Counted from the first letter of the stretch, positions 19,563 through 60,064 are shown. The stretch is 64,000 bases of DNA from Bugula neritina (GCA_964035545.1 OZ037771.1:5055190-5119189), one strand, 5' to 3'. Numbers and translations are program-made. The notes: a model not told the origin generated them from the letters alone.

Positions 19563-22500
19563 ATGGCTACCAACTCTGTAACCAATTCTGAGGATGAAGT
19601 AACCGCAGCAGCTTCACAAACAGGTCCGTATACAATATTAGTTAGTCTGGAGAATGGTAAAATATTTATCTAAATACATTGTATGCACCTGAATATATCT
19701 GTACAGGTTTTAATTACATCTTCCAGTTTGATAGTTAATTTGAAGAACTTGTTATCCCTCTTCAAGTTTCTTCTCTGAACTATATTTTAACTATGGTGTT
19801 TCTGTACATTTTCTGTGACTTTTATCTGCATGTAGCTTAATGAAGCTGTTGATACATTTTTAGATCACATTAAAAACAGGTTTATTTCTAATTCTTGCCA
19901 TTTCCTATACTTGCTAGTATTTTCTTCTTATCAACATGTTGTATGTGAAATCTTAAATAGAAACATCAGCATTTTCTAATAGATAAGTTTCTCATTTGTT
20001 TTCAGTCTACCTAATATAAGTTGAAGAGATTCTCAGTTTTATTCCTATTAATCTTCATGTTGATGACTCAACTATTAGTATGTTTGTCTCTATGAATATA
20101 GGAATATGTTTACTGCTGGTTTATATTTTCAATTATTATATAAGTAATTCAACAGTAAAATGATGTAATTTATACTATTAGAATATTAACATAGATAATT
20201 GTACTATAAACCAGGTGATATTATATTTACTCTTTTATTAGGTACATATATACTAAAAATAGAACATTTGTTTTTAGCAGAGAAATACAGGTGTTGGTGG
20301 AGGCACTCTGGTATGGATTCTATTGATGTCAAAGACTTATTCTTAAAGCCTACAGAACTCTATACAACGGAGGAGATAAAGAAGCTCTGTTCAGGTCATG
20401 TGATCACTGACCTACTTATAGTGGGAGATCTGCCACCTGCTGTTACAGAGTTTGCTCCACTTGTGACTAACCTGTGTATTCAACATCTAACCAGTATCAA
20501 CAGTTTAGAATAGTAAGTCTATCATCACTTTGTTATCAACATGTTTAAGGTCACAATATCTCTATCCTCTAGAACATGACTTCTCTTTAGATAATAATAT
20601 ATACTTGAGCTGTGTATCTTGCTGTAGATTTTTCAGTTGTAACTCACTGACTATTTACTGAAATGTTGAAGTGTTTGGTGAGTTATACTTGTATGGCATG
20701 TCAGCAATATTCCTTCGTATTTCTACTGCACCTGAGTAGTCATTCTGTTCTCCTTGAGTTATAAAAGTGAGTGCAGTAAGAGTGGAATTTTGGAAAAGTC
20801 TGTGTGCTTGATGAGAAAAAGTGCAAACTAAATTATGTTCAACCAAACCCCTAAAAAGAAATTCATAAAAACCCGTAAAGAATTGAATTTGAAAAGTATA
20901 GAATTTTTTCCACTATTGCACTGAAATAGAATTATATTAGTTTGAGCTGAAGCTGCTGGGGAAGAGGTCAACAATGACTTCTGGTGACTCACACATCATA
21001 GCTGATTACTTGCATGTGGGGATAACTTTTAATTATTAATTCTGCCAGTAGAGAAATGGATAGCTAAATATTCATTAAGGAAATCACATATCAAGTATAA
21101 TATTACTTGCACAGCTTGTAGCCTTAGGTTTGTTTCCTATTCTTCAAAGTATTCACTGCTATTAGTTTTGTCTCCGTTTCTTCTAGTGTATTATCCGTGC
21201 TTCAGAAGTTGTTTGAGTTGCTAAAATTGTGAGATAAACTTCTATATTTTTTGATCAAATGAAATACGGAGTAAAACAATCAACTATATTTAATATGTTC
21301 TGAACACAGCTATAGTTTATATATACAGATGAGTAATAATCTAGAGTCACTCTGAAATAAGATCTCCCTTCCTACCTATCAGCATTATCTCAATTGTATA
21401 TCCAGCTTTTATAATCACTTTATACTTAGTCCAGGGTTGTGAATAATTTATTCTTATTATCTCAAAGTAGTTGTTGGACTTGTCATTACTCAGGCCTACC
21501 TGTTATTGCCTGCCTTACAGCTACTATCACACCTATGGCCAGTTTTATACTGCATCACAATTTACTTGCACCAGAGTCAAGTTAAGTGAATTGAAATTAC
21601 AGAGATTTATCTTCTCTTGTTTTGTCTCCAGTTTTTACTCTCCTTCTGTAATCAGTAATTCTCAGGTGGCTGCCTTGGCAGCAAAACCTGGTCATACGGA
21701 GTAAAACCCATCTTCAATATTCTCTTTACAGGAAAATTGTAGCAACTGCTTTTGATTTCGCAATTTGTTACAACTAAATCATCTAATCTATTAAAAAGCA
21801 TAGTCTTTTCATACTTACTTTGGTTTAATTGCTAATCTTGTATGTATTCTCTCTGTATTCTAATTATATGTATTATATGTATAATAGAACTGATACTAGT
21901 AGTCCCAGCATACCAACTCTTTAGTAATGAAATAAATTCATAAACACAAATAACTGTCACAATTCATACTTGCAGAGCAGAAATAATAGAAACTCACTGC
22001 ATGTTTAATATAATATTTCTACAACTTGTATAATTATAGTCATGGTATATTGTATGTATATTACAGTCTCTCCCAACTCACACATCTACACACATTAGAT
22101 GTGTCTGGTAATAAGTTAGGAACATTACCTGAGGTGATACCAAAGATGGAGTCACTTACAGAGTTACATCTACAGCGCTGTGACTTACATACATTACCAG
22201 ACAGGTGAGTTATATTAGTTATATGTGTTCTACTATTATGTAAACATATAATAAAGTGTAACAGAACTGATACTAGTAGTCTCAGCATACCAACTTTCTA
22301 GTAATAAAGTGAATATTATTCTCAAATGGAAAATTGTTTTAGCATTGATTTAGTAATTTGTTACACTAAATCATCTAATCTCTTAAAAAGGACTTTCTTC
22401 CCATATTTACTTTGGTCTAAACTCTAATCACTAAAGTTGTATGTATATTACATTCTCTCTGTGTTCTAATTCTATGTACATATATAATAGAGTATAACAG

Positions 22501-25500
22501 AAATGATAATAGTAGTCCCAGCATACTAACTCTCCAGTAATAAAGTGGATATTATTCTTAAACAAACTTCCCACCCTTTTCGCCTAGACCAGTGGTTCCC
22601 AGCCTCGAGGGAATTCTCCCCTAGAGGGGAGGTTGGGCTTTTTAGGGGGGGGGGGGTGGATTTAGATTTTAGGAAATTCACGCAGTTTATTGAAGGCTTT
22701 TTTGAGCCCTTGCATGTTACATGTACATGCATATCTATAAACCTTCATCTTAGTTAATCTATTTAACCAAACCATATTCTGCAATCTCAGTTTACTTCAA
22801 CATGAATGTGTTTATTAATTACTCTACCCTGATTGTTCTCTGAACTACTTTGAATCGATGTCAAAAAGTTTGCAAAAACCAATGGGCCAACTTTAAGCAA
22901 GCCAATCTCTATAATATACCATACATACATAATACAAGTATCAAAGCTAGTGACTATATTTGCTACACTAAATAATCTGAACCTAAAAATACAGGAGTGC
23001 AATCATCTTATCATTGCTTTGCATTGCAGCATCAATGTTTTCAAAGTTACACTAAAGTTGTGGCATCTATCAAAAATATGGTGTCTTTCCCCACACTCCA
23101 TGAACTATTTTAGGAAAAGAACCTGTTCTGATGTCAAGTAAAACCGGCACACTGGTGTTAAATTTACTCAAACCCCCCATGCTGAACCCGAAACCCTCCA
23201 TCTTAAACCCCCAACCCCAATTCTTTAACTTTAATATTGAAAATGTACCATTTTTACCCAATTTTCCATTTGTTTCACCACTACCTGCGCCGCTACTACC
23301 TGCGCCACTACTACCTGTGCCACTTTTACCGAACACCACTTGTTCCAGGTTCTTTCTCCAAAAAACTTCTGCGGATCTCTCTGAACTTTTATTGGAGTTT
23401 TAAAAATATTTTTCTGAGCTACCTCTCAAAAAGAAAGAGCTAGATTCTTAGCTTGACAAACATGTGATCCATTGCAACGTTCTGTTAAAAGAATCCAGAA
23501 GAATTACAAGAGGATTTCATTGAGTTGGTTTACAATTCAGCAATGAAGGTTGATTTGAAATCTTCTTTAATTGATGTATTGTGGGTGGTGTCTGGTATAA
23601 AAGGCACAGGTAAAAATGGCAAAAATTAAAGAGTGTGTAAAAATGGCACATTTTCAATGTTGGGGTGAGCGGTTTGGAGTTTGGGGATGGGATTTGAGGT
23701 GAGATTTTGGGTTTGAATACAAGTTGGAGGTTTTGGTTTGGGGTTCAATTTTGATGGCCGGAGTTGGGGTTTGGGACAATTTACCATCAGTGTGCCAGTC
23801 TTACCTACTTCTCCATTTGTGCCATGTTCACCTAAAATCATTTTGGGTTTTAACAAGCAAACTCTCTCCACACGTAGCTGAAAAAGCAGAGTTTTGGTGC
23901 CACCCAGCGCCATCTTTCCAAGGGAGGTAGGATTCTCATTAGTTCAAAGAGAAGAGAAACTGCCCTCATCTGCAGAGTGAATTAAGATGGGCATGGCCAA
24001 AAACAGCAATGCAGACTTATGCAAGCTGGCACAAAAGAATCATTATAAATTGAACTGCTCCTTGTTCTATACATGCATAACATAATAATAACGATAATAT
24101 AACTACTATTATAATTATATTTTAATAGAACAAACTATATTGTATTGTATCCTATATTATCATCATGTCAGTCATGAAACTTTTTTTGCTTTATGAAAGG
24201 GGGGAATTAATACGGTAGTCAACATTTATTAAAGGGGGGAATAGTAGGAAAAAGGTTGGGAGCCATTGGCCTAGACCACCCTCATTTCCTGTTGGATTAT
24301 ATTGTATGTTTCCATTTGTCAGATTCTTCATATCCATTATACCATTGATTCTTATGCATTGGAGTTGAAGCTAATATCACCATCTTTGCTGCAAACATCG
24401 CAATACCACTGCAGACGTTTTTCCTCATGTTTATAGACATACATTTCACCCCAACCTGTTATCTAATCACATCATTGTCCTTATGCTCCTCATAAATTAT
24501 CCTAAAGATGTGCCTGGACATTCTCATTTATGCTGTCACCATTCTGATGGATTATAGTCACAATTTCATTCTATTAATATCTAATAATCGTCTTTTTCTT
24601 GTTTTAGCAACTTGTATCTAGGTATATATAGGTTCTTATAGGTATATAAGTGTATAGGTTCTTTGCTTCCATCTCTTGTAGGTATTCATAGACTGTCCCA
24701 TACGCCTTCTCTTTGGCTGTTACAATTTTGTTTGTCGTCAGTTTTTTCGTCTCTCCGTATACTTTCTCTGTGATGTTTCCCTTCTCTTCATCGTCACTAC
24801 ACCTAGAATTTTTCCATTTTTTGAATACTTTTTACTTTCCATTACAAACTACAGGATGTCAGCATTGCGCAACCAGGACTCTTTCTATATATTTACCACA
24901 TGTTGAAACTACCTATTCTCTTTTGGCTATCCCTACTGCACACAATTAACTGGCAATCCATACTTACAAAGCAACACTATAGAATAAACTCACAGTATGT
25001 TTAACATAGCATTCCTGAAACTTGTATAATTATAGTCATGGTATATTGTATGTATATTACAGTCTCTCCCAACTCACACATCTACACACATTATATGTGT
25101 CTTATAATAAGTTGGGAACATTACCTGAGGTGATACCAAAGATGGAGTCACTTACAAAGCTACGTCTATGGAACTGTGACTTACATACATTACCAGACAG
25201 GTGAGTCATAACATGTTCACTGCTTTTACATAAACTGTAGAGATTAGTATAATATTAAACACAACTTTTCACCTTTCTCACCTAACTGACTATAGTCCTG
25301 CAAGGTAGCTGTTCTGCAATCTCCCAGCTCAATCACACTCGGCTGTGGACTTCTTCTTGCTTAAGGCTCCAATACTTCTTGATATATTTTATAGTATGTT
25401 CCCATTTGTCAGATTTTTAATATCTCCATATACCATTGATTTTTATACATTATAATTGAGGTTAATATCCTCATCATTTCTTTTTTGCAAATATGCAAAT

Positions 25501-28500
25501 ACCACTGCAGAAATTTTTTCATCATGTGTGTAGGTTTTCGTTTCACCTCAGTCTGTTATCTAATCACATCATGTTCAACGTGCTCCTCGTAAGTTATCCC
25601 AAAATTGTGTCTCATTTCTACTGTCTTCATCCCGTCTTCCATCCCATGAGTAACTGACCAGGTTTCATTACCATACAGAATGGATATTCTAAACAGAAGT
25701 ACTGTATGTTTAGTTGATACCTTCTTATCACACAGCACTTCTGAGAGATCCTTCCACTTGTCCCAAGCCACTCCAATCCTCCTAGCTACTTCAGGGCCAC
25801 AACCCACCATTCTGATTTATTATAGTTGCAAGACATTTGAAAGCACTAGTCTCAGGCAGAGCACTGTAGTTATCTCAGTCATAGTATTTTTTCTTCTCCT
25901 TGTTATCTATTCTCACTGGTAGCATGTACTCAGTCTTGGTTCTGCTCAGCTTTAGTCCAGCATCTTCTAATTTCCTTTTCTCTGTTCTTCTAACCTATCA
26001 CTCTATTTGCCTATCCATTGCACAGCATTACATCATCTGCAAATTGCATGGCCCATTGGCAGTGGCCGAGAAGCTTGAAGTTTGGAACAGCTAGGAGGGT
26101 CATTATAGTTCCAAGTTCCAAGTCTCAGGCAGTTAGCTGTGTTTTTCTTGGTCCTTATTTTTGTTCTTCACCTTATATAACCTCGCAAAATGTTTAACAT
26201 AATATTCCTGTAACTTGTATAATTATAGTCATGGTATATTGTATGTATATTACAGTCTCTCCCAACTCACACATCTACACACATTAGATGTGTCTGGTAA
26301 TAAGTTAGGAACATTACCTGAGGTGATACCAAAGATGGAGTCACTTACAGAGTTATATCTAATGAAGTGTGACTTACATACATTACCTGACAGGTGAGTT
26401 ATATTAGTTATATATGTTCTACCATTATGTAAACATATAAAATATCATATATGATCATCTATTTTATATAAACTATAGAGATTACTAAGTTTGAATAAAT
26501 CTGATTGTAGCTTGCCATATATTATATGGTCATGTGTAAAAGTTTTGACACCCCCAACTTGTTTACCAGTTTATATCTTTGTTTGCAATTTCCGAAATTT
26601 ACATGCTAAAAATATTTAAATATATATTGAAACTTATTGGCTGAGCTACAACTCTAGATAATTTTTAACTGTATAACATAAGCTTGGCTATAAAAAAGTG
26701 CTAAAAAGCCCTTTACCATCAAATTTTTGCACTGAAAAATGATTTTGTGGGATTTTAAATTTTCTCTTTATTTGGTTAGCAAAATGAAGAAGATTGTAGA
26801 ATGAGATGTCATTTGTGTGTGAAAAGATTCTTGCACATAACATGTCAGTGTTTCAGCGTGAGTGAGTAACTATTAGTACCAATGACTGCTAGGCAGTAGG
26901 CTGACATATTCTCCACTAGCACAGCTGACTTTGTGGTTTATCTAACATTCTGTACCTGCATTGATGGCAGTTCTAGCTAAACTGACCATGTCAGTTGGTT
27001 TTATCTCAGCTACTTTTCTTTGTATTATCTATAAATTTGTTTTAACTTTTGCATGGGCCACTGAAGTACTTGAACTCTCTCTCTTTTACTAGGAAAGTAT
27101 GGTAGAAAGTAAAATTTTTTCTACTTTGTCTAAAGTTGCTTTTTTCTGCACAATCTCCACAAAGCTGGCAGCATGAATTAACTTATCAGAAAATTTTATT
27201 TTACCAGGTATTTCCATGATGTAGTAAGTTTCGTGAGCCTATTATAAGTATGAAATCACCAATGTCCTAACATTCTAAAAATCACTCCCCAGTTTCCTAT
27301 AATGCTGCAAAACCAAACCCAATTGTTTCTGTCTTTTAGTACTTCTTCGTTTGATGACTGCTGTCTGCTAAAATTTTGTCTTCCACCACTTACCATAACG
27401 AAGTGAAGTTTGAGTTTAGAGAAATAGTAGAATTGTGAGGTATATTATGTCATTGCTGCTTACTCAGTCTGTAATACAGTTAGATTTTAAGTTGCACAAT
27501 GTTTGTTCCCAGGTTGAAACTTTGTAAATATTTATTTACAATACAGTACTTTGACTTGAATGTACAATGGCATGAAGGCAAAAATTAACCTAAATGGATA
27601 AAGAACACTTGAAAATTTACTTCATATTAGGAACTCCTTTGAGCAAATATAGTTTATCCATTTAATATTATTAGAATATTATTTAAAATTATTTAAACTT
27701 GTTTAGTTAGATTAGAAGACAACATACAACACCATATGCAACATTTTGGCATTATTTTAAGTCTTTCAGAGTATTGAGAAATTGAAAATCCTGTTTAGCC
27801 ATTTATCAAAGCTGCAAAAAGTGCATGGGGGTGTCAAAACTTTTACGCATGGCTGTAATAGTTTTGCAATAATACAATTTCCATATATTGCAATTGTATT
27901 ATTGTAGTACAAAAGTTTTCAAATGTAATAAAATTTGCAAATTATAAATCAATATTCAATTTTTTTCACTGTAGTGGTTTTACTGTTAAGTCAAATAATC
28001 ATTCTAGTCTATATTTTCAGTTTGGCCTGTGTTCTAGTCATTTACAACAGTTGTGCTGTCAAACACTATTTATCTCCAAGGCTATGTTAGATACTCAACT
28101 ATTATGCATTTAATCAAGTTTTACTTTTACACATAATACATTTGATATAGAATAATACTAAAGTTATATATTATATACTTACTTGGTAGTGTTGGTCAAC
28201 TCAAGAATCTCCGACACCTAAACTTGTCAGGCAACTCTCAGATGACATCTTTAACTGCTCAACTTCTCAACATGCCTAATCTGACTAAACTGGAATGCAG
28301 GGACTGTAAATCACTCACATCTCCACCTTATGCTGTGTGTAAAGATGGACTACCTGCGATCACACAGTATTATAAAGATCTTAGGTCCGGTGGTCATGTA
28401 GAAGTTTCTGAAGCTGCTGTCGCTTTAGTGGGTAGATCTTTGTCTGGCAAAACCAGCCTAATAAAAACGCTGGTGAGATCAGATGGCAAAAGGGAATTAA

Positions 28501-31500
28501 CCAATAGAGCGGCTGATGCAGTGGAAGATGAAACAACTCGTGTCTTCAATATGGAAAAGTTAGTGGTTGGTGACAATGTTCTTCAGTTCATAGATTTTGG
28601 TGGTAATGAAATCTACCAATCTACGTACCAGTTCACATTGAAACAGAACTGTATTCCTATTGTGGTTGTGAATCTAAAGCAGTTTGAAGAGCTTTGTTTA
28701 GAGGTGAATGGTAATGAAGCAGTTCGATGCACATATTTTGATTGGCTCTCACATTTGTACCTGGCCAATTCCAGACTCAGAGCACCCAAACTGGTTTTCA
28801 CTCACCGAGATGCTTACAGTGCAGATGGATTTAAGGAGCTAAAAAGGCTGTTCTTTTTCCACACCAAAAGTGTATTCAATTTGATACAACTAGAAGAAAA
28901 TTCTCAAAAGAATTATCTTCGTTCTTTCACAGGATTATCTCATTTTCATCGCCAAGAGATGTTTCAAGAACAAGATATATATGTTGTGGGTGATGAATAT
29001 GAAGAGGTGTTTGATCAGCTGAGAAGTCATATCATATCTGACAGTAGACTAGTCGTGAAGAAGGTGCCTACTCTGTGGAGAAAAGTTGCTCAAACATTCA
29101 ACTCATTCCATGGAAGTTACAAGACATTTCCAGAAGTGCTTCAACATGTTATTGAATGCAAGTTGGAAAGTGAAGACCAGCTGAGAGTGATTCTGTCGTA
29201 CATGCATAACAGCGGCCATCTCATTTGGTACCAGGATAGGGAGAGTTTGCAGTCTCTGGTATTCTACGACATCTCTGTGGTTACAAAGCTGCTCCACGTA
29301 TTCTTCACTCACGAGAAGGAAGTGTGGAGCAATCGACGGTCAGCGATTGAAGAGGATTCACTTGACAATCCGTTGATAGAAAATGAAACAGAGTTTAATA
29401 ATTTGGCTCAAGAGTTTGTTCAAACTGGCAGAATGAGTGAGCAGCTGTTTCAGCATCTTCTGATAGCAGAGACCAGCTTCACCACGAGTGACAAGATGAA
29501 GGTGGCAGTCGCATTGCTGCAATCTTTCCAGTTGTTATTCAAGATGAAGGATTCATCCCGGAAACTAAGTTACACTATGCCATACTTCTCACAGGAGTAT
29601 TTCAGCGACTTGACTGCCTCCAGGAGACAACCTGTAAAGCTGTCTGTAGACATGGTGTTTGGTGGCCTGACTCCCCCTCAGTACGTTTACCACCAGGTTT
29701 CTGTAAAACTTCTCAATGATATCCAGGATTGTAGTGAAAAAGCTGTGAAAAAGAATGGAGTGGAGCTGAGAGACGAAGCTTACACCCTGCAGTTGCTGCA
29801 TGACTACAAATCTTGTAAACTCAGTATCTCCGTAACGTCTGCTTGTCGACAGATAGGCAATGCTTGGAGGATGTTGACCACTTCAGTTCATTCAACCGTA
29901 AAGTACGTCAACTTATGGTGGGGAGCAAGTAAAATCACCTGTATCAACTTGTGTGCTCACTGCCCATTGGTTGGAGAAAAGCGACCAAAGAGGTTCATCA
30001 ACCCACCCTGGTGTCGACCTCCAAAGTATGGTGAATCCCTTCCCATGATTTCAGATTCATCACCTGGTAGATGTGGAAAATACAGAGATACCCCAGCTTG
30101 TCTTTTACACCCAAGTTAGTATGATTGTCTTCTGTTGGGTTATTTATAGAATGTTTAGATGGCGATGTACTGTCCAAGTAATAGCAACCTCCATAATTCA
30201 TACTTATATTGCAGTTTTTCAGCTTTCTGGAGATGAGCTGCAGAAACTGAGTGACTTTGTGAAGACCAACTTCAAGCCACCAGGTATCTTGAGTTAAACT
30301 TACTTCTTGTGAACTGATTAAAGATAACTTTCTTCCTTCCTGATTCTCCATGTTTGTTATTGACAGTTGAAGTTGTTCCTGTAGGTTGTTGGTTTCATTA
30401 CATTTCTGTGAGCTGTTTATGTGATGTTTCCTGTACATGTAGATAATATTGGACACAGTAGAGCTGATACTCATACTGTTGGTACTGATGATGTACTGAG
30501 TGATGTTTCGGATGAAGAAGAAGGTTCTACCTCCACTTCAGAAGATCTTACCAAGTTGACACTAGTTCCTACTACTAATCAGAGTATCAAGTCTCTCTTC
30601 ATCAACACTTCAGAGGTTTGTATGTCATGTTGAATACTCTATAGCCTTGGCTCTCCTCTCTGTTATCTCTGTATAGCCTTGGCTCTCCTCTCTGTTATCT
30701 CTGTATAGCCTTGGCTCTCCTTTCTGTTATCTCTGTATAGCCTTGGCTCTCTTTTCTGTTATCTCTGTATAGCCTTGGCTCTCTTCTCAATTGTCTCTCT
30801 ATAGCCTTGGCTCTCCTCTCTGTTATCTCTGTATAGCCTTGGCTCTCCTTGAGCGTTGACGCAAAAGTTTTTCTGTCCAATAGAAAGCCGCCGCAACATT
30901 TTTGAATCAAGCAGCGCTTGATCCTAACGTACCACAATGCCATACAGGAAGCTCAGACATTTGTAAAAATGGCTGATATTTACTGTTACGGCCTACGGTA
31001 CGGTAAGTATGAATGATGGTCACTAATCTATGGAACAAACTGCCAGGTTGTACTTTCAATTTTCCCAGTACTGTTTGGGCTAGCACCTGTGTTAAAGCCA
31101 CACAATATGTCCGAAACCATATTAGTCTACTCATGGATGATTTTTAACTCATTATTCTTCAGTTGCTTATAATATGAGATGAATAAGTACTAAACTAATT
31201 ACATAGTGTGTATCTACAGATATACAAGATGACGAGTCCATTCAGAGGAAGAGCTCTGATTATAAACAACAACAAATATAGAAATATAGGACAGAGACTT
31301 GGCTCTAGTTATGATGTTGACAACACATTTGCTCTGTTCAGGAAGATGAGTTTTGAGGTTGTGAAGCAGAAGGATCTCACAGCTGAGGTATATTTCTATT
31401 TACTTGTAGTTGTCTCCCTTTTCTTATCACATAGTGTGACTAGTTATTAGTGGTAAATGTTTCCTTTCAATGTTATAATAGCCTGCAGACTTGTCTATTG

Positions 31501-40990: not shown

Positions 40991-41913
40991 TCAAGTTGCA
41001 CCACATGTAAGTGTCATGCATTGTAATTTTATCTCGAAGACTTTCACTGTTTCAGTTTCACTTTGAGTCTGTGATGCAATGTCAAAGTGAATATGTATAT
41101 GATAGTGAATGTCAATATGAGTATAAATATAAATAATCTAATAGTTAATAGGAATATTGAATATAAAGAAGAATATGAACATATTCGTATTGATGTTGAT
41201 AATTATAAATAATAATTATATTATTGATTTATTCTGATTGACATTAAATTTGATGATTGATTGATGATCGAAGTGTCATCTAGTTTGACATTCACTATGA
41301 GTATGGCTCGTTTTAAATTATATTCGCTATGAATATTACAATAATGACTTTAGTTATGGGTGTTCTGACCGTTAACACTATCACCATGGTCAGTGGGTAG
41401 GCTTGAAGATAATACTTATAGCTTAGTTTTAAAGTATAGCCTATAGGCCTTCCAACAGCGTAAGGTGTTTTTAAATTATTTATTCAACTCAAAGAGTAAT
41501 ATTATATTTTAGCTTTTAAGTTATATTTGTGGTCAATGTATTGTTAGGATTTGCTTGGCTTGGCCACAACACACCTCCAACACTTATCAAGGAAGAGTTA
41601 AAACATTTAATATGTTATACTTGAATTATATAGTAAAGTTTGAAATATGGATTGAGATCTGATCCAATAATAAAATATGTGTTTCTAGTTTTTGGTATCT
41701 GTTTAGCAGAGCTATAGTTGTCACAATGATTTGTATTATGATTACTGGTAGTAAAGACAGTGATGGAAATGTAATGTATACTGTTTGGCTCACAGAGCTA
41801 TGGGTGTGACAGTGAGGTCATGGTTTGTTTATATGTATGACATCTGCTGTAGCAGAGACAGTAACAGAAATTCTCAACACAGAAGATAGTAACCACTATA
41901 TTCTGTTTAGAAT

Positions 41914-43695: not shown

Positions 43696-44513
43696 ATTGT
43701 TCACCAGTTTTACCAATAACTAACTTTTATTCAATAGTAAATATCCAAGAAGTAGGTTACAAAAAGACAATTTGATTTATTCCCAAAGTGAAAGTCTATG
43801 TTCAAACTAGAGTAGACTTGTTATCAGATTATCAGTAATTACTGCAGTATCTATGCCCACAGTACAGAGGTCTTGGAAACAATAAAATATTTTTCATGCT
43901 AATGACAAGTCTATACCTCCACAACAGGTAGATGATTGTATAGTTAATAAACATGAAACACAATGGAATAGCCTACAAGTTGGTATTTCTGGTGAACATA
44001 AGTAAAAGATGAGACATAGGAAATTACTATTAGAATACTATTGAAGGTTGTCCTCACAGTTTCCATTATTATTAATAAATCAATTTCTTTGTTCTAGTAG
44101 TTAGTACCTGTTAAACAATGAAATGAAATATACTAAGTTGTCAAACTAGATATTTCCTCTTGTCCTAAACCAACTCTTATGCAATATTCAATAATCTTGT
44201 CTCAAACATGTAAGCCAAGTTACTGTTAAACTTGTTGATTAAAACTGTATGTCACAAATTATCAAATGCTATAAATTATCAATAGCTAAAAATACTAATA
44301 AAATATATATTGAAAATTATCAATAAATCAAAATGCTATGAACAAATTTATTCCTTGGTTCACCTTGTTTTATTTCACTGTCTCTCTACTGCTTACTATT
44401 CTACTTCCTCTACACACCCTTTCACTCAATATACATACATTGTGTACTATCTCATACTCTATTCATAGTACATACATCAGTATTACATTGTAGTATCTGA
44501 TACTAGAAACAAC

Positions 44514-47500: not shown

Positions 47501-50500
47501 ATGTATATTACAGTCTCTCCCAACTCACACATCTACACACATTAAATGTTTCTGAGAATAAGTTAGGAACATTACCTGAGGTGATACCAAAGATGGAGTC
47601 ACTTACAGAGTTATGTCTATGGGGCTGTGACTTACATACATTACCAGACAGGTGAGTTATAATAGTTACATATGTCTACTATTATATAAACATATGATAG
47701 AGTAGAATAGAAGTGATACTAGTATTTCCAGCATACCAACTCTCCAGTAATAAAGTTGATACAATTCATCAACAAACCTCTCACCTTTTTAGCCTAGACC
47801 ATCCTCATTTCTTGTTGGATTATATTGCATGTTTCAATTTGTCAGATTCTGCATATCCATTATACCATTGATTCTTATGCATTGGAGTTGAAGCTAATAT
47901 CATCATCTTTGCTGCAAACATCGCAATACCACTGCAGACGTTTTCCCTCATGTTTATAGACATTCATTTCACCCCAACCTGTTATCTAATCACATCATTT
48001 TCCTTATGCTCCTCATAAATTATCCTAAAGATGTGTCTCGACATTCTCATTTATGCTGTCACCATTCTGATGGATTATAGTCACAATTTCATTCTATTAA
48101 TATCCAATAATTGTCTTTTTCTTGTTTGGCCAACTTGTATCTAGGTATATATAGGTTCTTATAGGTATATAAGTGTATAGGTTCTTTGCTTCGATCTCTT
48201 GTAGGTATTCATAGACTGTCTCATATGCCTTCTCTTTGGCTGTTGCAATTTTATTTGTCGTCTGTGTTTTCTTCTCTCCGTATACTTTCTCTGTGATCTT
48301 TCCCTTCTCTTCATCGTCACTACACCTAGAGGTTTTCCATCTTTTGAATACTTTTTACTTTCCATTACAAACTACAGGATGTATATTTATATATTTGCCA
48401 CATGTTGAAACTGCCTATTCTCTTTTGGCTATTCTTACTGCACACAATTAACTGGCAATCCATACTTACAAAGCAACAATAAAATACTCACTGGGTGTTT
48501 AACATAGCATTCCTGTAACTTGTATAATTATAGTCATGGTTTGTTGTATGTATATTACAGTCTCTCCCAACTCACACATCTACACACATTAGATGTGTCT
48601 GGTAATAAGTTAGGAACATTACCTGAGGTGATACTAAAGATGGAGTCACTTACAGAGTTATCTCTACTTGGCTGTGACTTACATACATTACCAGACAGGT
48701 GAGATATATTAGTTATATATGTTCTACTATTATGTAAACATATAATAAAGTATAACAGAACAAATACTAGTAGGCTCAGCATACCAACTCTCTAGTGATA
48801 ATATAGATATAATTCTTAAAAGCAAATAATGTACCCAATTCATACTAACAAGGTAATAATAATTTAGATTCACTGCATATCTGCCATATAATATTCCTGT
48901 AACTTGTATAACTATAGTCATGGTATATTGTATGTATATTACAGTCTCTCTCAACTCACACATCTACACACTTTAGATGTGCCTCTTAATAAGTTAGGAA
49001 CATTACCTGAGGTGATACCAAAGATGGAGTCACTTACACAGTTACATCTAAGCAACTGTGACTTGCATACATTACCTGACAGGTGAGATATATTAGTTAT
49101 ATATTGTCTACTATCATGTAAATATATAATAAAGTATAACAGAAGTGATACTAGTAGTCCCAGCATATCAACTCTCCAGTAATAAAGTGAATATAATACC
49201 TAAATACAAATAACTTACCCAATTTATATTACAAGGCAATAATAATTTAGACTCACTGCATATCTACCATATAATATTCCTGTAACTTGTATAATTATAG
49301 TCATGGTATATTGTATGTATATTACAGTCTCTCTCAACTCACACATCTACACACATTAGATGTGTCTCGTAATAAGTTAGGAACATTACCTGAGGTGATA
49401 CCAAAAATGGAGTCACTTACACAGTTAAGTCTAGAGGACTGTCACTTACATACATTACCAGACAGGTGAGTTATATTAGTTATATATGTTCTACTATTAT
49501 GTAAATATATACATGTAAGATATCATATATGATCATCTATTTTATATAAACTATAGAGATTACTAAGTTTGAATAAATCTGATTGCAGCTTGCAATATAT
49601 TATACAGTCACGAGTAAAAGTTTTGACTCCCCCAAATTGTTTACCGGTTTACATCTTTATTTGCAATTTCTGAATATTTGAATATGTATATAATGGAACT
49701 GATTGGCTGAGCTACAACTCTAGATAATTTTCAACTGTATAACACGAGGTTATTGATAGAAAAGTGCTAAAAAGCCCTCTACCATCAATTTTTGCACCGA
49801 AACATATTTATGTGGGATTTGAAATTTTTTCTGTATTTGGTTAGCAAAATTAAAATTGTATAATGAGAGATTTTTGTGCGTGAAAAGTTTTTGCACATAA
49901 CATGTCAGTGTTTCGGTGTGAGTGAGTAACTATTATCACCAATGACTGCCAGGCAGTAGGCTGACATATTCTCCACTAGCACAGCTGACTTTGTGGTTTA
50001 TCTCACATCCTGTACCTGCATTGATGACAGTTCAAGCTAAATTGACCATGTCAGTTGGTTTTATCTCAGCTACTTTTCTTTGTATTGTCTGTAATTTTTT
50101 TTAACCTTTGCATGGGCCACTAAAGTACTTGAACTTTCTCTCTTTTACTAGGAAAGTATGGTAGAAAGTAAATTTTTTATACTTTCTCTAAAGTTGCTTT
50201 TTTCTGCATAATCTCTACAAAGCTGGCAGCATGAATTTATCTTTCAGAAATTTTTATTTTACTAGATATTTCCATAGTAGTAAGTTTCATAAGCCAATTA
50301 TAAGTATGAAATCACCAATGTCATGACATTCCAAAAGTCACTCCCCAGTTTCCTGTAATGCTGCAAAACCAAACCCAATTACTTCTTTCTGCTAGTACTT
50401 TTTAGTTTGATGACTGCTGTCTGCTAAAATTTTGTCTTCTACCACTCAACATAACGGAGTGAAGTTTCAGTTTAGAGAAATAGTAGAATTGCGAGGTATA

Positions 50501-53500
50501 TTATGTCATTACTGCTTACTCAGTCTGTAGTACAGTTTCATTTTAAGTTGCACAATGTTTGTTCCCACGTTGAAACTTTTGTAAATATTTATTCACAATA
50601 CACTATTTTGCCTTGAATGTACAATGGTGTGGAGGCAAAAATTAATCTAAATAGGTGAAAAACACTTGAAAATTTACTTCAGCTTGCGAGCTCCTTAGAG
50701 CAAATGTAGTTTATCTATTTAAAATTATTTAAATATGTTTAGTTAAATTAGTAGACAACATACAAGACCAAATGCAACATTTTGGCATTTCTTTAAATTT
50801 TTTGAAATATCAAGAGATTGAAAGTCCTGTTTAGCCGTATATCAAAGCTGCAAAAAGTACATGGGGGTGTCAAAACTTTTACGTATGGCTGTAATAATTT
50901 TGCAATAATACACTTTGCATATGTTGCAATTGTATTATAGTAGATCCAAAGTTTTGAGATGTAATAAAATTTTCTAGTTATAAATCTATACTCGATGTTT
51001 TCACTGTAATGGCTGTACTGTGAATTCAAACAATCATCATAGTCTATATTTTCAGTTTGGACTGTGTTCTAGTCATTTGCAACAGTTTATCTCCCAGACT
51101 ATGTTAGATGCTTAACTATCATACATTCAATCAAGTTTTACTTTTAGGCATGATACATTTGATATAGAATAATACTAAAGTTATATTATATACTTACTTG
51201 GTAGTGTTGGTCAACTCAAGAATCTCCGATACCTGGACTTGACAAACAACTCTGAGATGACATCTTTAACTCCTCAACTTCTCAACATGCCTAATCTGAC
51301 TAAACTGTACTGCTTCAAGTGTGAATCACTCACATCCCCGCCTTATGCTGTGTGTGTAGACAGACTACCAGCTATCAGACAGTATTATAAAGATCTTAGG
51401 TCTGGTGGTCATGTAAAGGTTTCTGAAGCTACGGTCGCTCTAGTGGGTAGATCGTTATCGGGGAAAACCAGCCTAGCAAAAACGCTGGTGGGATCAGATG
51501 GCAAAAGGGAATTAACCAATAGAGCGGCTGATGCAGTGGAAGATGAAACAACTCGTGTCTTCAATATGGAAAAGTTAGTGGTTGGTGACAATGTTCTTCA
51601 GTTCATAGATTTTGGTGGTAATGAAATCTACCAATTTACCTACCAGTTCACTTTGAAACAGAACTGTATTCCTATTGTGGTTGTGAATCTAAAAGAGTTT
51701 GAACAACTCTATTTCGAGATGAATGGTAATGAAGCAGTTCGATGCACATATTTTGATTGGCTCTCACATCTGTACCTGGCCAATCCTAGACTCAGAGCAC
51801 CCAAACTGGTTTTCACTCACCGAGATGCTTACAGTGCAGATGGATTTGAAGAGCTAAAAAGGCTGTTCTTTTTCCACACCAAAAGTGTATTCAATTTGAT
51901 ACAACTAGAAGAAAATTCTCAAAAGAATTATCTTCGTTCTTTCACAGGAATTTCTCATTTTCAGTGCCAAGAGCTGTTTCAAGAACAAGATATATATGTT
52001 GTGGGTGATGAATATGAAGAGGTGTTTGATCAGCTGAGAAGTCATATCATATCTGACAGTAAACTAGTCGTGAAGAAGGTGCCTACTCTGTGGAGAAAAG
52101 TTGCTCAAACATTCAACTCCTTCCATGGGAGTTACAAGACATTTCCAGAAGTGCTTCAACATGTCATTGAATGCAAGTTGGCAAATGAAGACCAGCTGAG
52201 AGTGATTCTCTCGTACATGCATAACAGCGGCCATCTCATTTGGTACCAGAATAGGGAGAGTTTGCAGTCTCTGGTATTCTATGACATCTCTGTGGTTACA
52301 AAGCTGCTCCACGTATTCTTCACTCACGAGAAGGAAGTGTGGAGCAATCGACGGTCAGCGGTTGAAGCGGATTCACTTGACAATCCGTTGATAGAAAATG
52401 AAACAGAGTTTAACAATTTGGCTCAAGAGTTTGTTCAAACTGGCAGGATGAGCGAGAAGCTGTTTCAGCATCTTCTGATAGCAGAGACCAGCTTCACCAC
52501 GAGTGACAAGATGAAGGTGGCAGTCGCATTGCTACAATCTTTCCAGTTGTTATTCGAGATGAAGGATTCATCCCAGAGACTAAGTTACACTATGCCGTAC
52601 TTCTCACAGGAGTATTTCAGCGACTTGACCGCCTCCAGGAGACAACCTGTAAAACTGTCAGTAGACATGTTGTTTGGTGGCTTGACTCCCCCTCAGTACG
52701 TCTACCACCAGATTTCTGTGAAGCTTCTCAATGATATCCAGGATTGTAGTGAAAAAGCTGTGAGAAAGAATGGAGTGGAGCTGAGAGACGATGCTTACAC
52801 CCTGCAGTTGCTGCATGACTACAAATCTCGTAAACTCACTATATCGGTAACGTCTGCTTGTCGGCAGATAGGCAATGCTTGGAAGATGTTGACCACTTCA
52901 GTTCATTCAACCGTAAAGTACGTCAACTCCACATGGAGAGCAAGTAAAATCACCTTCATCAATTTGTGTGCTCACTGCCCATTAGTTGGAGAAAAGCGAC
53001 CAAAGAGGTTCATCAACCCACCCTGGTGTCGACCTCCAAAGGATGGTGAATCCCTTCCCATGACTTCACATTCATCACCTGGTAGATGTGGAACATACAG
53101 AGATGTCCCAGCTTGTCTCTTACACCCAAGTTAGTATGATTATCTTCTCGTAGGTTATTTATAGGATATTCAAATGATGATGTACTGTCCAAGTAATAGC
53201 AACCTTCATAATTCGCACTTATATTGCAGCTTTCCAGCTTTCTGGAGATGAGCTGCAGAAACTGAGTGACTTTGTGAAGACCAACTTCAAGCCACCAGGT
53301 ATCTTGAGTTAAACTTACTTCTTGTGAACTGATTAAAGATAACTTTCTTCCTTTCTGATTCTCCATCTTTGTTAAATTTACAGTTGAAGTTGTTCCTGCA
53401 GGTTGTTGGTTTCATTACATTTCTGTGAGCTGTTTATGTGATGTTTCCTGTACATGTAGATAATATTGGACACAGTGGAGCTGCTACTCATACTGTTGGT

Positions 53501-56500
53501 ACTGATGATGTACTGAGTGATGTTTCGGATGAAGAAGAAGGTTCTACCTCCACTTCAGAAGATCTTACCAAGTTGACACTAGTTCCTACTACTAATCAGA
53601 GTATCAAGTCTCTCTTCATCAACACTTCAAAGGTTTGTAAGTCATGTTGAATATTCTGTAGCCTTGGCTCTCCTCTCTGCTATCTCTGTATAGCCTTGGC
53701 TCTCCTCTCTATTATCTCTGTATAGCCTTGGCTCTCTTCTCTGTTATCTCTGTATAGCCTTGGCTTTCCTCTCTGTTATCTCCATATAGCCTTGGCTCTC
53801 CTCTCTGTTATCTCCATATAGCCTTGGCTCTCCTCTCTGCTATCTCTGTATAGCATTGGCTCTCCTCTCTGTTATCTTTGTATAGCCTTGGCTCTCCTCT
53901 CTGTTATCTCTGTATAGCCTTGGCTCTCCTCTCTATTGTCTCTGTATAGCCTTGGCTCTTCTTTCCACTCTTATCTGGTCAACTACTTACCAGCTGTCTT
54001 AATTGCAAAAATATGTCACCTTATTTCTAGCACTATATATTAACAACTTTACTGTGATTTTGAAATAACCTTCTTTTAACAGTCTTGTGATTGATTTACC
54101 CCTCATTCACGCTTACTGTACCGTCAGCCATAGCGAAAAATATCAGCCATTTTTAATGTGTCCGGGCTGAAGCTTTCAAAGTTCGCTATTAGGTATGGTT
54201 TATGACACTTCATTGGACAATTATATCCAATGCGTTGACGCAAAAGTTTTTCTGTCCAATAGAAGTGCGCACAAGATTTTTGAATTAAGCAGTGCTTCAT
54301 TGTGATTGATTACGTACCGCAACGCCATACAAGAAATTTAGACATTTGTAAAAATGGCTGATATTTGCTGTTATAGCCTACGGTGCGTTAAGTGTGAATG
54401 ATGGGTTGCTATTCTATGGAACAAACTGCTAGGTTATACTTTATATTTTCCCAGTACTGTTTGGGCTAGCAGAAGCCACACAATATGTCAGAACCCATAT
54501 TAGTCTACTCATGGATGATTTTTAACTCTTCAGTTGCTTATAATATAACATGAGCAGGTCAGTTGTGTTCTATTCAGTATTATATTCTCTATATAGAATA
54601 TACTGAGTAAGTACTAAACTAATTACATAGTCTGTATCTACAGATATACAAGATGACGAGTCCATTCAGAGGAAGAGCTCTGATTATAAACAACAACAAG
54701 TATAGAAATGGAGGAGAGAGACTTGGCTCTAATTATGATGTTGACAACACATTTGCTCTGTTCAGGAAGATGGGATTTGAGGTTGTGAAGCAGAAGGATC
54801 TCACAGCTGAGGTATATTTCTATTTAATTGTAGTTGTCTCCCTCTTTCTATCACGTAGTGTGACTAGTTATTAGTGGTCAATGTTTCACTTCAATGTTAT
54901 AATAGCCTGCAGACTTATCCATTGAATCAGTTAATAAGTTTGGGAAATACAAACTCTTAACTTTTGGGCTAACTTTTGTTTCACGGAGCTAACTTCCTAA
55001 AGGCTAGTATGAGACCTGACAAATATTCTCTCACATTGAGTTTGTATACTGTGTGTGTTGTGTTATATTCATATACAGGGGATACTTCAGTGTATTCAAT
55101 CAGAGACAAGAGATGAGATTCATAACACTTATGGTATGTTCTTCCTGTTTCTGTTTGCACACGGAGCTAATGGAATGATTCATGGAATTGACTCACAGCC
55201 AGTCTATCTAACACAGATCTACAATCTCATTAACTCTACAAATTTTCCCAACATGGCCGGCAAGCCTAAAGTTGTGGTTATTCAGGCGTGCAGAGTTGGT
55301 GAGTGTAGATATGATACGAGTAAGAATATATTATACTATTGTAATACTGTATTATATGATACTCTAGTCTTCATACATATACATAGAATACTGGTTGGTA
55401 TATCACATGTGTTACTAATCAATCAGGTAACTCAGTCAGTCAAACTGAGCAGAATATTCAACAGAGTACCAACTCCTCCTCACCAGAACTTTCTGCTCTC
55501 AGAACTCATCAACAGGAAGCTGAGACTTCAACTGGACAGAGGAACTTTGATGTTGACGACCTTCTAATCCTTCATTCCTGCTTTGAAAGTAAGAATTTTG
55601 TCCACCGATAGAAACGAATATTTTTTGCATTATTTTAAGATTGACATAATTTTGTTGAGAAAATCAACTCAAAATATTATCATCCAAAATTTTCTTACGG
55701 CAAATCTGCTATTCAATTGAAAATTAATAACAAATAGAATAAAAAGTGCAGGTAGCAGCTGTGCTGTGCTGTCTAATCACATGACCTTTCATAAACCTGA
55801 ACTGAGTACATAGACTATTTGTGTGTGAGTTACAGTTATCTAGTTTTCATGTAATCTGTGATACACTAGTCTGTACAGTTTATACTCTGCTGCCCTAAAA
55901 ATGCCCTGCTAAGTTTTTTTCCAGCTGAATGTTTTTAATTTAAAGTGAGACTGTTAAGTTACCAAACAATTCTGTGTGGTTATTCTCTATACACCTAAAT
56001 CATGGGCCACAACTCCCAATCGCCGTCAAGTAGTTGTGAAACCCACCAGTCATGTCACTTTCTCAAGATATACCTTTCGTTGCTGAAACAACACAATTTA
56101 CAAATTTTCAATTTGCAATTCTCATTAGTTTTTACTGGATAGCGTCACTCACTGTTACTATACACTGTATAATATTTACCTTTTAACTCATTGTATTATT
56201 TTAATAGACAGTGCATCTATGAAGTTTGATTACGGTGGGTCATTATTGATAAGAACACTTGTCAGGACTTTACACAGACATGGCTGTCATCGTGATCTTG
56301 CTGACTTATTTGATATTGTGAGTAACTTCCTGTGACATCATTTCCTATTTAGAAGAGGCTGTTTCCATATTAGCCAGTGTGGTGTAGTCACAGTAGTATA
56401 GTTCTAGTGACTAGACATAGTATAGTCATAGTATAATATAGTCATAGTGTAGTGAATTTTGCCAGTTCACTATTATTATTTGTGGGTCTACTTAATCAAA

Positions 56501-57753
56501 GCCACTGCGACAGGTTGTTTACGATAAGATACTTTATTATTTACACAAATACAAGAAGGTTATTTACTGCTAGCATGAATAGAAAACGATTACATAATTA
56601 GTGAGCTTTAATACACAACTGTTCTAAATGAAGTCCCAAGCTGCTCTGCCGGCTAGCTACTCAGCGCACTGCAACTACGAGTAGCTAGCTCCACCTGCTA
56701 TCAATTAGTGTGACTGTCCTGATTGGCTAGCGTTAGTGGTGCCACTGTCGACTGTAAGATATTGTCGGGTAACCGTCTACGCCGAGTCGTCTCTGTCGCT
56801 ACTAATTAACTCCATCACCATAAGCATAACACTAGCATCTGCTACTAAGCAGCCAACTGTCAGTGCAAACCATCTACGCCTCCTACAGTTGTTGATTCCA
56901 TTTAACTAGTCTTGCCTTGTTTAACTGCGTGCATTAGTAGCTAGCAATAATTTTCCAGCAGATTGTACGCATTCCAATTGTCAGCTATTATGATAATTGA
57001 TCTCCAGTACTTATAGCCATTATGCCAAGCGTATAGAGAGTAAGCCACAAAGAGTTATCCTTTCGATAATAACATAATCTGAAATCCATTACAATAGTAT
57101 AATATAGTCATAGCATAATATAGTCATAGTATAATATAGTCATAGTATAATATAGTCATAGTATAATATAGTCATAGTATAGTCATAGTATCATATAGTT
57201 ATAGTCTAATATAGTCATATATAATGTTGTTAGTAAATATGTTTATAGCCACACATTGAATCAGTTGATGTTATTTCAATGTGCTTTTGTTTCTCAGCTT
57301 ATGCCTATTGTACTTAGCTGCTTATCTGTAATAGCAATTTTATAGCTATCCACTTAAGTGTGCTACTTTATGTTTTTTGTTCTTAGTTCACTTGCTTGTA
57401 ATATTCAGTGCAATAAAGAGCTCTGTCAAATTATAACTCTAACATATAATAAAACCATAGCATAATATAGTCATAGCATAACATGGTCATAGTAAAATAA
57501 TCATAGTATGGGCTATAGCTGTAGTGACTAGTCATACATATTTGACATTTGCAAATGTCAGGTAAAATATATAGGGTTCAGCATTTACCTAATTTTAATA
57601 TGTTTGAAGGTAAAGCACAGAGTGAGGAAAATATCTGGTAAAAGGAGAGAAAGAAATCCAACTGTTTACATAACACAGACTCCTGTGGTTATAAATACTC
57701 TCACTGGTAGAAGGAAGATTTACTTGTTTCCTTTATTCTATGGAGAGTGGTAG
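44514..57753 (+). CDS. LRR-Roc-COR-caspase gene, copy 3 (complete model, ~1318 aa, 5 LRR cassettes)
   Basis: Exons 44514-44574, 45234-45468, 47130-47267, 47514-47651, 48561-48698, 48945-49082, 49328-49465, 51205-53129, 53230-53298, 53460-53632, 54644-54811, 55079-55298, 55427-55588, 56208-56317, 57610-57753. Total 3957 nt, in frame. Confidence 0.85.
46241..46510. mobile_element. Short insertion specific to copy 3 (MITE-like fragment)
   Basis: Flanked by direct repeat GCTTAG; absent from copy 2 (~21425); begins CCTAGGGCCACACTG. Confidence 0.45.
47130..49465 (+). CDS. Five 138-bp LRR exon cassettes, copy 3
   Basis: 47130-47267 (HVSRN/ELHLEDC), 47514-47651 (NVSEN/ELCLWGC), 48561-48698 (DVSGN/ELSLLGC), 48945-49082 (DVPLN/QLHLSNC), 49328-49465 (DVSRN/QLSLEDC). 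Basic exon+intron period is 383-384 bp. Confidence 0.9.
49605..50891. mobile_element. Old Tc1/mariner-like element (paralogous copy)
   Basis: TA|CAGTCACGAGTAAAAGTTTTGAC...GTCAAAACTTTTACGTATGGCTG|TA. Confidence 0.72.
51205..53129 (+). CDS. Last LRRs + Roc GTPase + COR exon, copy 3
   Basis: 631-aa ORF with the same G motifs. Confidence 0.92.
53659..53962. repeat. 32-bp intronic minisatellite, copy 3
   Basis: About 9.5 units. Confidence 0.85.
54644..57753 (+). CDS. Caspase p20+p10 exons, copy 3
   Basis: AHG and QACRV intact; p10 has SMKFDYGGS. Confidence 0.9.
56448..57093 (-). mobile_element. Solo LTR inserted in the 16-bp minisatellite of copy 3
   Basis: TGTAGTGAATTT...AAATCCATTACA termini; 4-bp TSD ATAG; AATAAA on minus strand near 56535; absent from copies 1 and 2. 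Confidence 0.75.

Positions 57754-59880: not shown

Positions 59881-59885
<5 letters not shown>
58670..59885 (+). mobile_element. 5'-truncated, degenerate Penelope-like retroelement (Naiad-like), RT thumb + GIY-YIG endonuclease
   Basis: SNHPPSI, WYNPPYS, VSYSCMPN, CNC..CPLKGNC, VIYQA..YIGLSE, RYANH, ELSKYIW, CNLC, CRH; stops and frameshifts present; followed by a hammerhead motif and (TA)n. Confidence 0.88.
59802..59852 (+). ncRNA. Minimal type I hammerhead ribozyme
   Basis: Stem I TATTGTGC/GCGCAATA; core CTGAGGA; stem II GTGC-GGAAGAG-GCAT; GAAA; very short stem III; GTA cleavage triplet at 59842-59844. Confidence 0.7.
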
Positions 59886-59965
<80 letters not shown>

Positions 59966-59989
59966 GTTTACATATATATATTATATACG

Positions 59990-60064
<75 letters not shown>

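Follow-up and report, generated by a model that had tools for sequence, protein, structure and literature searches.

Three intact copies of one gene, each encoding on a single chain leucine-rich repeats (LRRs), a Roc GTPase, a COR domain and a caspase, lie in tandem and on the same strand in the genome of the bryozoan Bugula neritina. The stretch analysed, here called the window, is 64,000 nucleotides long (GCA_964035545.1 OZ037771.1:5055190-5119189), and positions are counted from its first letter. The copies, named A, B and C in their order along the strand, are tandem paralogues of recent origin. They are part of a larger family in bryozoans, with at least 68 loci at which a Roc-COR exon is followed by a caspase.

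Three tandem copies of one gene

The copies were found by tblastn with two large open frames and by comparing the window with itself using blastn. The tblastn search returns Roc-COR exons and caspase active-site exons three times over, in identical order and on one strand, and the self-comparison reveals a segmental triplication with ~92% DNA identity, introns included. In every gene two N-terminal exons are followed by three to five LRR cassettes of 138 nt and a Roc-COR exon of ~1.9 kb, and then by a linker in two exons and a caspase in five. The exons of copy B were derived from the sequence and then transferred to A and C, and each junction and its phase were checked exon by exon; the positions given below rest on this phase check, together with such other evidence as is named. 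AG and GT flank all exons of the three copies with the single exception of the exon-2 acceptor of copy A, which reads AA rather than AG; a CAG 3 nt downstream preserves the frame. The summed exon lengths are divisible by three, and internal stops are absent from all three copies. The predicted proteins have 1224 (B), 1318 (C) and 1313 (A) amino acids, the last being the length in the phase-check model, which becomes ~1312 once the exon-2 acceptor is corrected (one codon fewer; the model was not re-run). The original prediction, made from the sequence alone, had described GT-AG exons joined in a single frame from the LRRs through Roc, COR and an acidic linker into a caspase, without stop or frameshift in the visible exons of any copy, and had singled out the motifs GRSLSGKT, DFGG, THRD, AHG and QACR. 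The exon-by-exon check bears this out over 1224-1318 codons, and each motif is present in all three copies. The range it gave, 19563-57753, contains copies B and C and ends on the stop codon of C, but copy A falls outside it.

Copy B has 13 exons (19563-33677). The exon with the ATG (19563-19623) is followed by exon 2 (20278-20512), which codes for an N-terminal region, by three LRR cassettes (22067-22204, 25063-25200 and 26256-26393) and by an exon of 641 codons carrying the end of the LRRs, Roc, COR-A and COR-B (28190-30114), for which there is evidence from Pfam, sequence motifs, the PDB, structure prediction and substitution rates (dN/dS 0.36-0.48). Linker exon 1 (30215-30283) and acidic linker exon 2 (30443-30615) are each defined by joints in RNA-derived contigs. 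At this end of COR the junctions are as originally named, with one small exon, that at 30215-30283, to be added. Caspase exons 1 (31220-31387) and 2 (31655-31874, with the catalytic His and Cys) are supported by Pfam, PDB and RNA joints. Exon 3 (32003-32164; linker with FDVDD and the first p10 strand) has RNA joints on its side, and exon 4 (32784-32893; p10, with the tripeptide SMR) an RNA joint, an alignment to Watersipora proteins and a weak PDB match. Exon 5 (33540-33677), which ends in the stop codon TAG, is placed by the Watersipora alignment and has RNA depth.

Copy C follows the plan of B except that it has five LRR cassettes. Its ATG exon (44514-44574) and exon 2 (45234-45468) precede cassettes at 47130-47267, 47514-47651, 48561-48698, 48945-49082 and 49328-49465. 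The exon for the LRR end, Roc and COR (51205-53129) matches Roc, COR-A and COR-B in Pfam and contains the motifs. Linker exons 1 (53230-53298) and 2, the acidic one (53460-53632), lead to caspase exon 1 (54644-54811; Watersipora alignment), exon 2 (55079-55298; His and Cys, found by Pfam and tblastn), exon 3 (55427-55588), exon 4 (56208-56317; SMK, Watersipora alignment) and exon 5 (57610-57753; Watersipora alignment), the last with the stop at 57753.

Of copy A, only the half from Roc-COR to the caspase (9435-15249) is in the window; the rest, made up of the ATG exon, exon 2 and five LRR cassettes, sits 12-27 kb upstream of the window. The LRR-end/Roc/COR exon has 637 codons (9435-11347; tblastn and motifs) and is followed by linker exon 1 (11448-11516), acidic linker exon 2 (11676-11848), caspase exon 1 with the start of p20 (12631-12798; Watersipora alignment), exon 2 with the His of AHG and the Cys of QACR (13335-13554; tblastn), exon 3 with the intersubunit linker and the start of p10 (13683-13844), exon 4 of p10 with SMK (14430-14539; Watersipora alignment) and exon 5 with the stop (15106-15249; Watersipora alignment).

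The junctions between COR and the caspase are seen in RNA. Four sequencing runs were aligned to positions 28000-33999 at 90% identity or more. Runs X1 and X2 are strongly biased towards exons, with depths of hundreds to thousands in exon bins and of 0-30 in intron bins; X14 is an oligo-dT metatranscriptome, and X16 has a flat depth like that of DNA. Contigs of X1, X2 and X14 contain the GT..AG joints 30114>30215, 30283>30443, 30615>31220, 31387>31655, 31874>32003 and 32164>32784, and none of these six occurs in X16. The third was aligned as 30612>31218 plus one letter, which is the exact joint with one G>A difference. One contig of 302 nt (X1 record 6) carries both the joint from the COR end to linker 1 and that from linker 1 to linker 2, the sides of the joints being 63 and 66 nt in X1, while X1 record 7 covers linker exon 2 and caspase exon 1. 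Family members are transcribed, and the junctions predicted at 30114/30215, 30443 and 31220 are present as GT..AG joints in RNA-derived contigs and absent from the DNA run. Separate transcription of the caspase, which the original prediction had named as a finding that would speak against a fused gene, is contradicted for at least part of the transcripts by these COR-to-caspase joints. A further joint in one X1 contig, 32897>33597, has non-canonical ends and was put down to a paralogue or to faulty alignment.

Purifying selection acts on the Roc-COR exon. Its ratio of non-synonymous to synonymous substitution (dN/dS) is 0.34-0.48, with dS of ~0.12-0.14, which is in the range of intron divergence, and non-synonymous changes are deficient (binomial p = 1.7e-8). 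Neutral simulation at 6% substitution introduces ~10 new stops per copy, and the probability of no stop is ~0, so that intactness by chance is excluded. The caspase active-site exon is 97-100% identical across the nine members of the subfamily and the Roc-COR exons 89-92%. Divergence along the unit is a mosaic, introns differing by 2-20%, which suggests gene conversion.

Modules of the predicted protein

All domain, PDB and fold searches were made on single exons. In Pfam, the Roc-COR exon matches Roc with 32.2 and 28.0 bits (cut-off 27); COR-A (32.4 bits against a cut-off of 35.3; E = 1e-7) and COR-B (21.7 against 27) are both below the Pfam cut-offs. GRSLSGKT, DFGG and THRD correspond to G1, G3 and an LRRK-like G4. 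Searched against the PDB with phmmer, the exon retrieves only prokaryotic Rocos, CtRoco and Roco2 of M. barkeri, at 1e-8. An AlphaFold2 model of the 641-amino-acid exon, made with 45 homologues, has a pLDDT of 87.4 and a pTM of 0.86. Its top Foldseek matches are LRRK1 (8e05), CtRoco (6hlu, 3dpu and 3dpt) and many entries for LRRK2, all with probability 1.0, and the COR-only structure 3dpt gives a TM-score normalised by target of 0.63-0.66. The structural matches of the exon are to Roco proteins and small GTPases, and Pfam finds in it only Roc, MMR_HSR1 and COR, with no STAND ATPase of the NACHT or NB-ARC kind. As modelled, the central exon is established as a true Roc-COR tandem with the fold of LRRK1, LRRK2 and the Roco of C. 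tepidum. This is the module that is mutated in LRRK2 Parkinson's disease.

Caspase exons 1 and 2 match positions 1-49 and 51-128 of Pfam Peptidase_C14. Their PDB matches are to caspase-3 and CED-3 for exon 1 and to CED-3, caspase-2 and caspase-8 for exon 2. The catalytic His (in AHG) and Cys (in QACR) are found in A, B and C, and by sequence this part of the protein is an animal-type (C14A) caspase p20 with its His/Cys dyad. Of the residues that make up the Asp-specific S1 pocket of caspases (an Arg in p20, the Gln before the Cys and an Arg in p10), the first two occur in all copies, in (E/Q)RLGS and in QACR. The translations of exons 4 and 5 match the C-terminal end of Watersipora proteins (E from 1e-5 to 7e-4), at a place that is inside the complete Pfam caspase domain of those proteins or directly follows it. 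The linker between COR and the caspase is acidic, ~80 amino acids long and without a Pfam match; it contains several Asp motifs, and the intersubunit linker carries FDVD-D. It is plausible, judging from these motifs, that both linkers contain sites of self-cleavage.

The 13 LRR cassette exons of the three copies (five in A, three in B, five in C) are each 138 nt long and in phase 2 and encode two LRRs each; further LRRs follow at the start of the Roc-COR exon. Forty of the 45 cassette codons are nearly invariant, with a dN/dS of 0.2. The remaining five, at LRR positions 8, 10 and 11, carry five to eight different residues, and their dN of 0.82 against a dS of 0.076 gives a ratio (~10) that is inflated by the choice of these codons for their variability, although the contrast with the other 40 is still extreme. 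The five are the x positions of LxLxxN, which in LRR structures are exposed on the concave face of the repeats. The LRRs had been described as variable, and most of the variation indeed falls on concave-face codons, which is what a sensor would show. The N-terminal region has ~98 amino acids, and exon 2 has no Pfam match. On inspection, the translations of exons 1 and 2 contain no hydrophobic N-terminal stretch, so the product is probably cytosolic.

The family, its relatives and its surroundings

At least 70 single-exon matches to the Roc-COR exon were scored from 129 candidates in the 216-Mb genome, and 67 of the 70 are open. A caspase active-site exon lies downstream on the same strand at 68 of the 70, at a median distance of 1.7 kb. 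Genome-wide there are 130 matches to the caspase active-site exon. A second tandem array, with six genes of the same 90%-identity subfamily, is found on the minus strand of the contig that also holds the window, at C7:7582724-7715773, which is 2.5 Mb away and opposite in strand; two of its six Roc-COR exons have a stop codon. The genome also has three exon-sized matches above cut-off to the gasdermin N-terminal domain (PF04598), at C2:4312189-4312395(-), C2:2048552-2048743(+) and C2:4286293-4286505(+). To judge by these matches, gasdermin-like proteins are possible substrates of caspases in this animal.

Relatives exist in other animals. A HMMER search over 1.84 billion representative sequences returned 77 proteins at E <1e-30, mostly exon-sized open frames from assemblies. 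XP_067948342.1 and XP_067947674.1 of Watersipora subatra have LRR, Roc or COR, and Peptidase_C14, and Bugula neritina proteins named 'CASP8' (KAF6024315.1), which are among the long matches, have the same architecture. In amphioxus, XP_002614028.1 of Branchiostoma has LRR, Roc, COR-A, COR-B and Peptidase_C14, and in a second search the LRR-Roc-COR-caspase architecture appeared in at least 12 more clusters, drawn from three Branchiostoma species. The name given to the relatives by NCBI is 'MFHAS1 homolog'. Two truncated Bugula neritina proteins are 63-82% identical to the N-terminal, LRR and Roc exons; the next named proteins in closeness, at ~30%, are those of Watersipora subatra. Over Roc-COR and the caspase, identity is ~25-45% for Watersipora and the Bugula 'CASP8' cluster and 22-35% for amphioxus, and the bryozoan proteins are collinear with all exon groups of the window. 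A word-index search with the Watersipora caspase region found Watersipora proteins only, which reflects a limit of the index and not absence elsewhere.

In an unrooted Roc-COR tree, built without reference Rocos and without any sequence confirmed as bacterial, the bryozoan proteins form one clade with a support of 100, apart from the other animal MFHAS1-like Rocos included in it. The rows of the tree that were looked up are MFHAS1-like proteins of Branchiostoma, Ptychodera, Lingula and Owenia, plus some metagenome proteins. Amphioxus also has LRR-Roc-COR proteins that end in a 'GT4-conflict' glycosyltransferase (P0107, P0125 and P0173), one of which has both the caspase and GT4. The Roc-COR of the amphioxus caspase-type proteins groups with these GT4-type Rocos, among MFHAS1-like proteins of one hemichordate, one brachiopod and one annelid. 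Its position away from the bryozoan clade favours separate fusions or effector swapping, and the intermixing of GT4-type and caspase-type Roc-COR in the tree points to the swapping of effectors on one scaffold. The tree thus suggests that a caspase was joined to a Roco separately in bryozoans and in amphioxus, or that effectors were swapped.

The claim of novelty made for this architecture fared less well. No characterised animal Roco-caspase appears in the literature searched, but the architecture is already in the protein sets of Watersipora, Bugula and Branchiostoma; the claim was overstated, and the family is an expanded animal version of a Roco with an effector that stands uncharacterised in public protein sets. 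The searchable literature yielded no description of an LRR-Roc-COR-caspase family in animals. Owenia fusiformis has one caspase with a ROC pro-domain, according to a lophotrochozoan caspase survey of 2024 in which no bryozoan was sampled (PMC11463336), and Aplysia has ROCO proteins bearing TIR and Death domains (PMC9334734). In bacterial AP-GTPase (Roc)-COR proteins the LRRs at the N terminus evolve fast, and the C-terminal domain is one of at least 24 alternatives that include caspase; these proteins have been read as counter-invader, or conflict, systems (Kaur et al. 2021, PMC8195603). In a preprint on bacterial gasdermins, a Runella protease preparation labelled Roc-COR-CHAT stands beside a legend that maps the cleavage site of a Runella gasdermin (bioRxiv 10.1101/2021.06.07.447441).

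Mobile elements and repeats lie in and around the copies. The intron of copy A between its last LRR cassette and its Roc-COR exon holds a Polinton/Maverick-like insertion of 19.6 kb, of which positions 1-9232 are in the window and ~10.4 kb more lie upstream. TTAA stands on either side of it, its ends read AGG..CCT, and its open reading frames are densely packed and intronless. On its minus strand, 5367-6734 encodes an rve integrase that also has chromodomain and PLA2-like parts, and 2846-3319 and 3562-4113 encode pieces of a double-jelly-roll capsid. Between B and C is a Ty3/gypsy-like retroelement (36244-40990, minus strand), with no equivalent in the spacer between A and B; its frame of 1349 amino acids (36703-40752) is open from gag through protease, reverse transcriptase and RNaseH to integrase. 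The segment 41911-43698 is a 1.8-kb insertion relative to the A-B spacer, bounded by inverted repeats of 474 bp (41911-42384 and 43225-43698) that are 99.4% identical, and looks like a foldback element or a DNA element of the miniature inverted-repeat transposable element kind. In the intron of B that precedes caspase exon 1, contig depth at 30800-31000 reaches ~35,000-48,000 in one RNA-like run and in the DNA run alike, with many loose ends. This is a very high-copy repeat that perhaps resembles a short interspersed nuclear element, and a 32-bp tandem repeat lies just upstream of it (30637-30850). The intron before the last caspase exon of B has a long AT-rich minisatellite with units of ~16 bp (32940-33350), and similar arrays are found at 59880-60280 and 62470-63220.

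Proposed function and its alternatives

We consider it somewhat probable that these proteins are adaptor-free receptors on a Roco scaffold, in which the LRRs sense, Roc-COR switches and the caspase fires, in the service of immunity or allorecognition. The hypervariable concave face of the LRRs would bind a non-self, altered-self or allogeneic ligand; binding would release or re-set the nucleotide switch of Roc-COR and so alter the oligomeric state of the scaffold, and the C-terminal caspase domains, brought together in this way, would be activated by proximity. The caspase may then cut itself at Asp sites in the linkers, such as FDVD-D, and the freed or activated enzyme would cleave death or inflammatory substrates. 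Such a protein would work like an NLR inflammasome, only without the adaptor and on a Roco scaffold, and its likely use would be innate immunity or colony allorecognition. A fuller version, which we put forward tentatively, is that the genome holds a germline repertoire of at least 68 Roco-based intracellular receptors, with positively selected, modular LRR cassettes that would recognise pathogens or foreign colonies and a caspase fired without an adaptor, and that it was assembled in animals independently of the bacterial LRR-Roc-COR-caspase proteins and of the amphioxus ones.

Comparison with known systems helps to place the family. MFHAS1, LRRK1, LRRK2 and DAPK1 have the same Roc-COR fold and the LRRK-like G4 (THxD), and in MFHAS1 and LRRK the LRRs are likewise N-terminal of Roc. 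The bryozoan proteins differ from them in having a caspase as output, where the others have a kinase, a kinase with a death domain, or nothing; they lack ankyrin, armadillo and WD40 repeats, and they number dozens of members with hypervariable LRR cassettes. Like NLRP1/CARD8, NLRC4 and Apaf-1, they would sense through LRRs or other repeats, switch by means of an NTPase and activate a caspase through induced proximity. Their NTPase, however, is a Ras-like Roc with COR and not a STAND (NACHT/NB-ARC) ATPase; they are not members of that family, and because the caspase is on the same chain no step through a CARD, PYD or DED adaptor is needed. Their Pfam architecture of LRR, Roc, COR-A/B and Peptidase_C14 is that of the Watersipora, Bugula 'CASP8' and Branchiostoma proteins, although the Roc-COR of the amphioxus proteins is in a different group of the tree. 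The analogy drawn in the original prediction to prokaryotic LRR-Roc-COR-effector proteins is apt, to judge from PMC8195603 and the Roc-COR-CHAT label in bioRxiv 10.1101/2021.06.07.447441. The order of modules is the same, the C-terminal effector can be a caspase-fold protease, there are many paralogues per genome, and sensor, switch and effector are on a single chain. The bryozoan genes, in contrast, have introns, and their effector, whose best matches are CED-3 and caspases 2, 8 and 3, is of the animal type, with a p20 and a putative p10, rather than CHAT or a bacterial caspase-like protein. The bacterial AP-GTPase conflict pattern (LRR, Roc, COR, a C-terminal effector, here at least 68 loci, and hypervariable LRRs) recurs in full, which makes the two alike in organisation but does not demonstrate common descent.

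A number of observations weigh against the receptor model or against the gene model beneath it. The RNA contigs are short (150-380 nt), and each could derive from one or another of the nine near-identical paralogues. The joints observed run from the end of COR to caspase exon 4, with the LRR-to-Roc joint outside that span, and the last caspase joint, 32893>33540, is not cleanly seen in the RNA contigs of 28000-33999. Some contigs are unspliced over 30115-30214 and have a stop just after the donor, so that a caspase-less isoform or pre-mRNA is possible. The inflation of dN/dS at the variable LRR codons belongs here as well. Pfam finds nothing in the isolated p10 exons, and the top PDB match of exon 4, the p10 of caspase-4, is weak (E ~0.8). 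The active-site motifs depart from those of canonical caspases, with AHG for SHG and QACRVG for QACRG, and the p10 position that aligns, weakly, with the Arg of the P1 pocket holds an Arg only in B (SMR), A and C having a Lys there (SMK). Finally, the Roco of C. tepidum is dimeric without GTP and becomes a monomer on GTP binding, so that any switch in the bryozoan Roc-COR may run in either direction.

The shortness of the contigs, among which there is no single long transcript, and the unspliced contigs over the first linker intron would fit an arrangement of two neighbouring separate genes, an MFHAS1-like Roco and a caspase, with the joined model as a read-through artefact. Yet in the RNA contigs the end of COR is joined to linker 1, linker 1 to linker 2 and linker 2 to caspase exon 1, in frame and precisely at GT..AG boundaries; the first caspase exon has an acceptor and is in phase with the linker; the same adjacency recurs at 68 of 70 loci; and fused models are present in Watersipora, Bugula and Branchiostoma. 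The joints, the phase and the adjacency largely rule out two genes, which we regard as very improbable. Less credible still is an array of decaying pseudogenes held similar by gene conversion. The mosaic divergence, with introns differing by 2-20%, the mobile elements within and between copies and the stops in two of the six sister copies at 7.6 Mb on C7 would be in keeping with it. But all three copies have an open frame, 1224-1318 codons long, in which no junction lacks a usable splice site, dN/dS is below 0.5, neutral decay would give ~10 stops per copy, and transcripts are present; for A, B and C the open frames, the dN/dS and the stop simulation rule it out.

Two further explanations accept the fused protein and differ over its use. 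It might serve a programmed, non-immune death or the sensing of stress, for example in the cyclic regression of polypides, with the LRRs bound to an endogenous partner. A caspase effector and a large repertoire, with its 130 active-site exon matches, would suit such a role, but at least 68 members, hypervariability confined to concave-face codons and birth-and-death arrays are typical of diverse and changing ligands and not of a single endogenous partner, and we think this explanation unlikely. A similarly small likelihood attaches to the idea that the caspase is a processing or signalling protease or a scaffold, in the manner of caspase-8/cFLIP, a paracaspase or a cleaver of gasdermin or cytokine-like proteins, rather than a direct executioner of apoptosis. 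In its favour, the best exon matches are of the initiator type (CED-3, caspase-2 and caspase-8), the three gasdermin N-terminal matches lie in the same genome, and the Arg/Lys difference in the P1 pocket hints that the paralogues may differ in substrate specificity; the Runella Roc-COR-CHAT label next to the gasdermin cleavage-site legend, in bioRxiv 10.1101/2021.06.07.447441, points the same way. No link, positional or other, connects these genes with the gasdermin-like exons, however, and the intact catalytic dyad makes a pure scaffold unlikely.

The receptor model bears on more than this one genome. What is understood of caspase activation in animals involves two kinds of machinery, death-fold adaptors and STAND ATPase platforms (NLR/Apaf-1). 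Dozens of genes of this family, intact and transcribed, have a Ras-like Roc-COR switch wired directly to a caspase and to an LRR sensor that is diversifying, and if the model is true, regulated caspase activation would have a third route besides those two. If caspases were attached separately in bryozoans and amphioxus, the two would be a case of convergent receptor design. Should the function hold, the output of a Roc-COR switch could be read as proteolysis, which would be useful in studies of Roco mechanism, and the bacterial LRR-Roc-COR-effector defence proteins would have their counterpart in an animal. The family would also provide a candidate repertoire for immunity or allorecognition in a colonial phylum whose immunity is almost unknown.

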